The notes beneath the pieces were generated by a model. That model worked only from the letters and a program-made list of their open reading frames with translations. It had not been told where the DNA came from and made no database searches. Below are positions 40,301 through 43,300 of a stretch of DNA of 64,000 nt, in pieces. This stretch comes from Iphione sp. A-MEVVRFRX5 (lineage: Eukaryota): contig OZ320314.1 of assembly GCA_976226885.1 (NCBI GenBank), forward strand, positions 34,162,001 to 34,226,000, in the 5' to 3' direction. Numbering within the stretch: position 1 is the first letter of the stretch; each line of letters begins with the position of its first letter. The position numbers were made by a program, and so were the translations under genes.

Positions 40301-43300
40301 TAAAATGTGCTTCTTAATGTATGACACTAGAGTGATAATGTTTCGGCACATTTTACTAATAAAGGAGATAATGGTCATGCACTCATTAATCTAACTAAGG
40401 TGAATGACGGTTGATTTGATTTTAGATCTTATATTGCTACCCCATTTGAGGTGCGTGTGTGAGGTGGAAGACGAAATGAAAGAGCTGTTTTTGCCATTTT
40501 CATTTCTGTCGCTCACCATTTGTCTTGTTTCATGAGGGAACAGGGTGGAAATTCAAAGTTTGATTTGAACAATGAAAACAAAAAGTTCAATCTAATCATG
40601 TCTGCAAAGGAACTGCTACTTATTCTAGCATGATTTAAGTTATATGGGACCACAATTAAGCCATAACATTTGAAGAATACGTATAGTCTGATGCCCTCCA
40701 GTTTTCTTTTAGCATATATATTGTTAACTCTTTCAACGAATTGTTTCGATAATCACCAGGGCAGCAAAAGATTAGCATGGACAATGCAATTTTGAGTCGA
40801 CTTTTTATAATCGATTGATTCATGGAACCGGCTTATCAGCTTAAGCAAGTTGCCGTTTTTGCCACGATTATTTAAAGTTCATCGTCATGGCTGCCCCACT
40901 CTCATAGAGCGTGTCAAATGGAAGGAAGTGTGGGCAGTCTAGTCGAGGTTGTGCATGAGTACTTGGCTTCAGGTGTAGACATGTGAGCCAACTGGAAGAA
41001 ACCTCGATAGCACAGATGACATGACCATTGACAGGTTCAGAGCCTTTCCAAAAACGAACGAAAAGATAATGCAAAGACAACAAAACGCACTCCTGTTCCC
41101 TCAGAAATGGACACAAAATCCTCTCCCTCCGCCTTTTTGTCGATCATTGCCAGATTTATCTAGTTCATTAGTTTTTTCATCATTTCTTTTTGTGATTAGT
41201 ATATGAGGTATGATCTTCATGGGTATCGTATTCGGTCGGAGTAGTATCACTTCGTTGTCCCTTTCTGGAGAAAATTCTGGACCTATAAAAGGAGAACAAG
41301 CTACGATACGAAATAAGAGTCGAACCCACCACGATCAGCCTCTCCTGTGTATTATTGACATTTTTCTCTTTATGCAGCATGACGCCGTTTATAAAGCACA
41401 ACACCTTTATTACTTTTTCGAATTTAAATTAATACATTCAATATCGATTTACCCATTCTAGGGTCTACTGATAATGGTTCACTTCTTTCAAACTTGTAGT
41501 TTTCCTTTCGGTAGATGTCCTGTCCCTTGATTGTTTTAAATGTTTTGGTTGTACTTGTGTTTGTAGGTATCGTATGCACGACCAAGCAGTGAAAGCATAA
41601 AGGGTGCAAACCTGTACATAAGTGGACTGCCAAAATCCATGACACAACTCCAACTGGAAAATATGTTTGCCTCATGTGGCACAATAATAAACTCCAGAAT
41701 TCTTTGTGACCACAGTACTGGTAGGCATTGCTACTACAATTTTTATGCAGTTTTGCTCAAACCATTTACCTCTCAACTCGGTGTCTTTCCAAAATGACCA
41801 GGTAAAGTTTAGGTCAGGACAACTGCAAAGACGCGCAAATTATGCTGGTGTATCATCTTATCCGAATTGGCTGTAATTTGGTTTGCTCAAGAATCAAAAC
41901 AGTCCCAAAACGTAGAACGAAAGGTTCTGCCCAGCCCGTCTCCCTGCTGTCCGAAAAACCGAACGTTTTGTTGGGAGGAGAGAAGCACTCAGTAATTGGC
42001 GGTTGTTACATTGACGTTGAGACGAGGTGCATGGTTTGGGTAGGCTGGGAAAGGTGATGGATGATGACCATTGGTGGTGAGAGGCGCTAACAACACCTAC
42101 GCTACTACCACTACTACTTCCGTACGACCTGACTGTCAGACATATACACATACATGAATAATGCTGGCTTTCTCGTACTTACCCCCAATCCTGTCCTTTC
42201 CTTAGGTATCTTACGCCCGACCAAGTAGTGAAAGTATAAAGGGAGCAAATTTGTATATATGTGGGTTGGCCAAGAATATGACCCAGATGGAATTGGAGCA
42301 GCTTTTTGCACCCTGTGGCAGGATAATCACCTCTAGAATACTCTATGATATCACAACAGGTTGGTAGAGTCACTGCCTCCTGACTCGTCCTCGCTTAACG
42401 TTCTGCAGAATTGTCATATGCACTGGCTACTCGGAAACTTGTGTTGTAAAGACAGTGTTAAAAGGCCGTGAAAGTCGCACAGAAGCCCACGGGCAGGCAA
42501 ATAAATCAATACATAACATGTAATTAGGTAAGAAAAAAAAGCAACAGAGGCGACCAGTTCCATGATATCTGCATCCGCTATGGCCACGTAACTTAAACTG
42601 CAATGTTCTTTTCCTTATGGTTGAATTAAAGAAAAAAATTAGCGAACATGCTGAACTTGTGGCCAGAAGGCAAATGGCAATTCCGTCCGTTCAGTGGTAT
42701 ATTTCGATATGCCTTCTTTTGCTAAGCGCTTGTCTAAAGCGAATATGCGATTAACAGTTGCATGTTGGTATTTCTCATTGTTTAAACCACGGCTAGTAGG
42801 CAGAAAATATGCTTTCTGTCTCTGTGCTTAGTGCTTCTGTAGATCTAACCCTTACGTTCAAAAACGTTCCAATTTTCTCAGTTTTATAGTTTACTGATCG
42901 AAAGACGTTCGCAGCATCTGTTGTGACTCTTGTGTTTTAAATTTGGTGTTATAGTTCTCGTATATTAGTTTCATTTAGCTGCATTCTGGACTGATAAATG
43001 TAGTAAAACTGTGTCGGTATTGATGTGAAAGATACATGTGTGAAACATGTAAACAGTCGTAAATTATTTGAATCAGAATCTGTTCATCTGGAAAACTGAT
43101 GCGAACTCTGTTCTAGATAATATGGACATGGCAGCAGAAGCAGTGAAATCTTTTGGTCCATCACTTTGGTTGCAGATTGCAGTTGTTACTGCTCTCTAAA
43201 TTATGGCGATTATTGCCATTAAGCTCGTCAGTTCTACGGGATTTCTAGCTTTGAATACAAACGTGTTTAATTCGGCTGTGATGCACGTTTCTTGGGAAAC

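Follow-up and report, generated by a model that had tools for sequence, protein, structure and literature searches.

Why does a gene for an RNA-binding protein of the ELAV/Hu family hold, one shortly after the other, two versions of the exon that encodes half of its second RNA-recognition motif (RRM2)? The question is raised by a 64,000-nucleotide stretch of DNA from Iphione sp. A-MEVVRFRX5 (assembly GCA_976226885.1, contig OZ320314.1, positions 34,162,001 to 34,226,000 of the forward strand), hereafter the window, in whose numbering all coordinates are given; every feature described lies on its + strand. A first-pass annotation, made from the sequence alone, had proposed that two neighbouring exons, here called A (41567..41720) and B (42206..42359), are tandem duplicates of which a functional mRNA can contain only one. 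We conclude with good confidence that they are a genuine and conserved mutually exclusive exon pair in a lophotrochozoan ELAV/Hu gene.

Two copies of one exon and their reading frame

Exons A and B are tandem duplicates of a single exon. Each is 154 nt long, lies between an AG and a GT, and consists of 51 codons plus one base, so that both run from phase 0 to phase 1 as first described. They lie 485 nt apart (41721..42205; donor gtaggc, with a C/U-rich acceptor tract ahead of B) within one shared intron, which is the arrangement of a tandem mutually exclusive pair. Exon A encodes the linker between RRM1 and RRM2 and strand beta1 (RNP2, LYISGL), helix alpha1 and strand beta2 of RRM2, and exon B (donor gttggt) encodes this segment in a second version (LYICGL..., YDITT). 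The copies are identical at 38 of 51 residues (75%) and 108 of 154 nucleotides (70%). A tblastn search of the 64-kb window with the A peptide found B at E = 4e-22, its only other matches were the RRM1 and RRM3 of the same gene, and no third copy or remnant of the exon appeared in the window at E <= 10.

Between the copies, twenty-three codons differ synonymously only and 13 non-synonymously. Nine of the first 18 codons have synonymous differences but none changes the residue, and all 13 replacements fall among the remaining 33 residues, as the first-pass annotation had counted them. By the Nei-Gojobori method, the proportion of synonymous differences (pS) is 0.85, which is saturated, and that of non-synonymous differences (pN) is 0.147; over the first 18 codons the values are 0.73 and 0. 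Because pS is saturated while pN is low, the duplication cannot be recent, and selection at the protein level has preserved both copies, which bears out the purifying selection on both copies that had been suggested.

The chance that the pair is a haplotype or assembly artefact is negligible. The copies share merely 70% of their nucleotides, and their likeness ends at the exon borders, leaving flanking introns that are unrelated, as had already been argued. A single DNA contig of 4,158 nt from a relative spans both exons, and single contigs from four other organisms also hold both. The window itself contains no N stretches.

Because 154 is not a multiple of three, a transcript that includes both exons or skips both runs into a stop codon. 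Joining A to B gives ...STGILRPTK-stop, after 7 codons. Joining the upstream exon (38186..38289, the second half of RRM1 ending ...NKTIK, phase 0 at its end, whose donor serves both A and B) directly to the common downstream exon (48890..49121) gives ...NKTIKDCPKG-stop, after 5 codons. From the reading frame, A-only and B-only mRNAs are predicted to be the sole productive ones, with exclusivity enforced by frame. In other words, mRNAs with both exons or with neither would make no ELAV and would probably be degraded. The proposal that only A-or-B transcripts give full protein thus holds by the frame and is matched by spliced RNA contigs of each form.

Use of the two exons and the basis of choice

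Contigs from four sequencing runs were aligned to 4,501 nt of the window: three of RNA (X1, X3 and X5) and one of DNA (X22). X3 and X5 represent two different related organisms, and X1 is RNA from seawater. X3 and X5 each have two spliced contigs of 208 nt, one joining the upstream exon to A and the other joining it to B, with GT..AG joints. The A and B contigs share one loose end, which is the slightly diverged start of the exon at 48890, and X1 also holds the joint from the upstream exon to A. Two of the four joints that the first-pass annotation had put forward for checking, 38289>41567 and 38289>42206, are therefore both present in the RNA contigs of relatives, each continuing to the 48890 exon. 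Contig depth for A and B is 350 and 395 in X3, and 40.7 and 21.3 in X5. Because spliced contigs of each form occur at similar depth, both exons are used. Neither an A-to-B joint nor a skipping joint was found in the RNA contigs of X1, X3 and X5, although such contigs drop rare variants.

These observations bear on the possibility that the pair is a device for dosage control, an unproductive-splicing switch that lowers ELAV output, with the two proteins being equivalent. RNA-binding proteins commonly autoregulate through unproductive splicing, double inclusion and double skipping each end in an early stop here, and the loss of rare variants from contigs leaves room for such RNAs. However, one poison or skippable exon would suffice for this purpose, and two intact coding copies would be unneeded. 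Both copies are under purifying selection (pN 0.15 vs pS 0.85) and carry type-specific residues across phyla, and the contigs contain neither of the joints that such a switch would produce. We consider dosage control as the main role of the pair to be distinctly unlikely.

The relatives also allow the exons to be compared with their surroundings. Between the window and the X3 and X5 contigs, exon A differs only at 41649 and 41675, both non-synonymous (L28H and C37S) and both shared with P0339, an RNA assembly protein that is the closest database match to the gene. The change L28H in these RNA relatives abolishes a leucine that is otherwise universal in A-type exons. In X22, which is DNA from another relative, the introns have accumulated many substitutions and indels and their middle section has been replaced. 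Its exons show no listed difference in A and four in B (three synonymous, and I49N); a further eight differences at most, in the piece that contains A, are unlisted and cannot be placed.

One could still suppose that, in the lineage of the window, one of the two has become a pseudo-exon, unused or in decay. Loss of this kind does occur, as a B remnant in Paralvinella (described below) proves, and the B exon of the window has an unusual alanine in the near-invariant GLPK motif. Yet the frames of A and B are open and their splice sites intact, spliced contigs from two organisms include each of them at comparable depth, and both are conserved amid the diverged intron of X22. A pseudo-exon is thus very improbable, and we return to a pair of which both members are used.

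How would one exon be chosen over the other? Donors of A exons have A at position +3 in six of six cases (gtaggc, gtactt, gtacta, gtataa, gtacta, gtaggg), and donors of B exons have a pyrimidine there in five of five (gttggt, gtcaga and three times gttaga). A pyrimidine at +3 is rare among animal 5' splice sites. In the window, A combines a consensus-like donor with a pyrimidine tract interrupted by G, and B combines a clean C/U tract with its +3-pyrimidine donor. Each exon would then pair a strong site with a weak one, as is usual where the choice is regulated. We propose that the choice between A and B is probably regulated through splice-site strength and that an intronic stem may assist.

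Two other mechanisms fit poorly. Steric exclusion depends on a distance of less than about 50 nt from donor to branch point, and the A-B intron is 485 nt in the window and 145-236 nt at other loci; the single gastropod-like locus L001, at 63 nt, may be short enough. No U12-type donor (/ATATCC or /GTATCC) is present among those of A (gtaggc), B (gttggt) and the upstream exon (gttagt).

The A-B intron folds more stably than its shuffled versions (z = -2.19, with 0 of 100 shuffles as stable). Its minimum-free-energy pair table contains a candidate stem of about 31 bp, which starts 33 nt past the donor of A and pairs 41753..41784 with 42008..42043; a local stem as good as this one was reached by 3 of 150 shuffled introns (p about 0.02). 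The part of the 3' arm within 42012-42066 has no listed difference in the DNA contig of the relative, where the neighbouring intron has many, and of the 5' arm only the first 12 nt lie in sequence alignable to that contig. We suggest, tentatively, that this stem may contribute to the choice. A hairpin between the G-rich block at 42012-42066 and the pyrimidine tract of B was considered and rejected, as the 211-nt fold gave z = -0.59. The suggestion that the flanking introns might fold into competing docking and selector pairings was only partly fruitful: no docking/selector triad was found in them, and the one candidate is the intronic stem just described. The 33 pairs of inverted repeats across 38290-48889 are unremarkable, and duplex energies among the upstream, middle and downstream introns do not exceed those of shuffles, although this whole-region method is too global to be informative.

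Farther downstream, a (CCG/CGT)n tract at 43799-43835, about 1.4 kb after B, is complementary, over about 32 nt and at 72% ungapped, to a (GGC/GGT)n tract at 48772-48805, which lies about 85 nt upstream of the acceptor at 48890. If the two were to pair, most of the 6.5-kb intron would be looped out.

Occurrence and age of the pair

The pair extends well beyond the window. The A peptide was searched against 1.84 billion representative proteins, many of the matches being single-exon reading frames on genomic contigs. One such frame, P0069, runs from an A-like exon tail through an intron into a B-like exon. Four independent loci have an A type followed by a B type, each of 154 nt with AG/GT borders, at spacings of 63 nt (L001), 236 nt (L002), 145 nt (L003/L004) and 203 nt (L005/L006). 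In Mercenaria mercenaria, Ruditapes philippinarum, Mya arenaria and Patella vulgata, the RefSeq (Gnomon) models include X1 and X2 isoforms of equal length that differ only in the block encoded by this exon, one being of A type (LYISGL...TQLDLE...) and the other of B type (LYICGL...). B-type isoforms are also present in Haliotis, in the chiton Liolophura and in Octopus. In the annelid Malacoceros the published ELAV1 is the B form, with A occurring in other members of its 90% cluster, and the Elav1 of Owenia is the A form. Exon A is thus placed in the window by its sequence, by spliced contigs from X1, X3 and X5, and by orthologues at loci L001-L007 and in the molluscs and annelids named; exon B is placed by its sequence, by contigs from X3 and X5, and by B types elsewhere. 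The first-pass annotation had attributed diversification of ELAV by exon duplication to the lineage of the window. The duplication inside one gene stands, but it is not private to that lineage, being common to molluscs and annelids.

The pair can also be reduced. In the annelid Paralvinella palmiformis (GCA_025642065.1) exon A is intact, but the B-type exon 480 nt farther downstream (L007:5480-5626) has decayed and contains two in-frame stops, so that one member of the pair has clearly been lost secondarily. No second copy or remnant was found in the ELAV gene of a cestode (Taenia) or of a springtail (Orchesella), each of which has a single copy of the exon; flatworms were represented by the one cestode gene, arthropod genomic loci by the one springtail, and spiralians by molluscs, annelids and the cestode. 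Two copepod-type proteins from marine metatranscriptomes, P0054 and P0216, are identical over 255 aligned residues outside the block and differ at 7 of 51 within it. Such a pattern would be expected if copepods had a mutually exclusive pair of their own for the homologous exon, and it hints at one. The arthropod-like contig P0082 has one exon copy only. A published report of two Aplysia family members, ApELAV1/2, describes proteins of different size and contains no exon data, and thus gives no support for them as an A/B pair.

When did the duplication take place? Column 28 of the block is leucine in 8 of 8 A exons, 0 of 10 B exons and 0 of 7 outgroup exons, and column 49 likewise separates the A from the B types. 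Together with the constant order of the exons and the shared feature of the B donors, these diagnostic columns argue for a single old origin. We think it highly probable, from these sequence features, that one duplication preceded the split of molluscs and annelids. Under this scenario the tandem duplication, before the two groups parted, would have copied an ancestral exon of 154 nt that covered the linker and the beta1-alpha1-beta2 half of RRM2. B looks closer to the outgroup exon, and A appears to be the derived copy. In a protein tree built without the block, the gene of the window groups weakly with annelids (81/89).

Several points weigh against this interpretation of the pair and its age. 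The exon tree, with its 51 columns, lacks resolution, and approximately unbiased (AU) tests reject none of the alternatives (A clade, p = 0.41; B clade, p = 0.14; A and B of the window as sisters, p = 0.175). B can be lost, as in Paralvinella. From contigs, the absence of double-inclusion or skipped transcripts cannot be proved, and ratios cannot be read reliably. Finally, the RNA runs come from close relatives, 2 nt off the window in each exon, and not demonstrably from the individual that supplied the window.

The lack of resolution bears on the idea of convergence, in which the same exon was duplicated separately in the annelid-like lineage of the window and in molluscs, and the likeness of A to A and B to B reflects parallel constraint. 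The exon tree indeed has no A and B clades, and mollusc A exons nest beside mollusc B exons in it. The AU test leaves the sister grouping of the two window exons standing, and the block may vary independently in the copepod proteins, so that this exon could be prone to duplication. However, the A-then-B order holds in every locus, all 8 A exons compared have Leu28, which no other exon has, column 49 is diagnostic, and all B exons share the pyrimidine at donor +3. An A clade is not rejected either, and partial gene conversion within molluscs would account for the tree. We therefore regard convergence as unlikely and favor one ancient duplication shared by the two groups.

The host gene, its two proteins and known systems

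Assignment of the host gene to the ELAV/Hu family was made with P0339, used in place of the spliced window protein; it is 90.5% identical to the A isoform of the window. P0339 scores 506.6 bits against the family profile TIGR01661 (ELAV_HUD_SF; cut-off 279.1), which both Mercenaria isoforms also exceed, and its score with the Sex-lethal profile TIGR01659 falls under the cut-off of that profile. The 339-residue gene model has the ELAV/Hu layout of two tandem RRMs, a hinge and a third RRM. In the AlphaFold model of P0339, three beta-alpha-beta-beta-alpha-beta units can be recognised, along with a hinge (211-285) that is disordered. The best PDB matches of its RRM1-2 are HuC 1FNX, HuD 1FXL and HuR 4ED5, and that of the third domain is HuR/ELAV RRM3.

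The remaining exons complete the frame around the pair. The N-terminus and the first half of RRM1 are encoded by 34154..34394, placed by its reading frame, a GT donor and an acceptor AG at 34152-53, and ending in phase 1. The N-terminus of P0339 agrees with the translation starting at 34154, and an X1 contig contains the junction to the second exon, itself placed by sequence and RNA joints. There is an in-frame ATG at 34187, from which the A and B isoforms alike count 339 residues. The true start codon, however, is predicted to lie in an exon farther upstream, because the relatives (MQITTAS...) and many lophotrochozoan ELAVs begin MQIT... and the exon at 34154 opens at an acceptor. The common downstream exon, entered in phase 1, extends from beta3 (RNP1, KGVGFIRF) to the end of RRM2 and the start of the hinge; a frame check and the loose ends of the A and B contigs place it, and its end is at 49121, correcting 49124. 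The last coding exon, 53998..54319, was identified by its reading frame and holds the rest of the hinge, RRM3 and the stop codon.

Transcripts from relatives suggest further splice variants in this gene. The window at 50450-50488 encodes 13 residues, 100% identical, of a 19-residue hinge insert in the P0339 and P0398 transcripts, which points to an alternative hinge exon inside the 49122-53997 intron. The end of the insert corresponds to sequence immediately before 53998, where an alternative acceptor may therefore lie. P0398 also has a 13-residue insert at residues 83-95 (EGPGRTPGQAGAG), exactly at the junction of exons 1 and 2, in loop 3 of RRM1 (window intron 34395-38185). It has no match in the translation of 38147-38185 and probably derives from a separate small exon.

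The consequence of the A/B choice can be placed on the model of P0339, in which the predicted local distance difference test score (pLDDT) is above 90 across the block. One of the 13 differences is the last residue of beta1 (RNP2; S/C), two are in loop 1, five in helix alpha1, three at or in beta2 and two in the beta2-beta3 loop, and the RRM1-RRM2 linker has none. Those in loop 1 include the alanine that replaces the near-invariant proline of GLPK in the B exon of the window. Those that lie on the sheet might affect how RNA is contacted. The five in alpha1 lie on the face away from the RNA-binding sheet, and this cluster suggests a surface for a partner or for another domain. We propose that each mRNA, with A or with B, would yield one of two 339-residue proteins differing at 13 residues, and that the two versions most likely tune the RNA or partner interactions of ELAV in different cells. 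The two may differ in RNA specificity, as first suggested for the pair. A bolder hypothesis is that A and B form a cell-type toggle of ELAV RNA or partner binding more than 500 million years old, from which lophotrochozoans would gain the functional diversity that several Hu/ELAV paralogs give vertebrates and flies, with B ancestral-like and A (with its Leu28, and very slow in bivalves) derived and endowed with its own targets. We hold it only as a speculative possibility, more likely wrong than right.

Proteins of the ELAV/Hu family regulate splicing, the choice of 3' end and mRNA stability in all neurons, and developmental studies of annelids and molluscs use elav as the standard neuronal marker. 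A conserved switch that rewrites half of RRM2 would mean that "the" ELAV of these animals is two proteins, and probes, antibodies, knock-downs and cloned cDNAs may reach one form only, Malacoceros ELAV1 being B and Owenia Elav1 being A. The pair also offers a natural minimal experiment, of 13 residues, on the RNA or partner specificity of a Hu-type RRM2. For gene predictors the tandem exons are a trap: because of them, the Mya arenaria model P0450 ("ELAV4-like protein", 427 residues) erroneously joins A and B by an invented bridge of eight residues.

The mollusc RefSeq isoform models from Mercenaria, Ruditapes, Mya and Patella represent the orthologous feature. They are automatic annotation only, and the organism of the window groups weakly with annelids. 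No published description of this exon pair was found in full-text literature searches; it is already in the automatic annotation of several molluscs but, as far as we found, unremarked. Frame-locked tandem-duplicate exons are well known as a kind, and the interest of this pair lies in its age, its host gene and the domain that it rewrites.

The closest parallels within the family are honeybee elavl2 and cricket fne, each a single ELAV/Hu gene whose protein products are diversified by alternative splicing that also affects RRM2 (PMC8553928); the gene of the window is comparable in this. In the insect genes the variation comes instead from skipping of exon 4 and from cassette exons and microexons, of which 3a and 4a lie in the loop between beta2 and beta3 and 4b-4d in the hinge (PMC8553928). 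They do not have a duplicated, homologous and frame-locked pair that swaps beta1-alpha1-beta2, whereas the window does. In this respect it resembles the classical mutually exclusive pairs that arose by tandem exon duplication, such as FGFR2 IIIb/IIIc and exons 2 and 3 of alpha-tropomyosin. Those of C. elegans unc-32 are also classical mutually exclusive exons (PMC3585155). What they share are neighbouring homologous exons that are equal in length and phase and of which an mRNA carries one, other combinations probably being removed through frame disruption and nonsense-mediated decay. Unlike in these cases, the host gene in the window is itself a regulator of neuronal splicing and mRNA stability, and what is exchanged is one half of an RNA-recognition motif. 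Vertebrates (HuR/B/C/D) and Drosophila (elav, fne, Rbp9) possess several ELAV/Hu paralogs that arose by whole-gene duplication or retroposition (PMC2529313). The outcome is alike in that several ELAV proteins with near-identical RRMs exist in one organism. However, where vertebrates and flies use gene duplication, the diversity here comes from the duplication of one exon in one gene, and thus only 13 residues differ.

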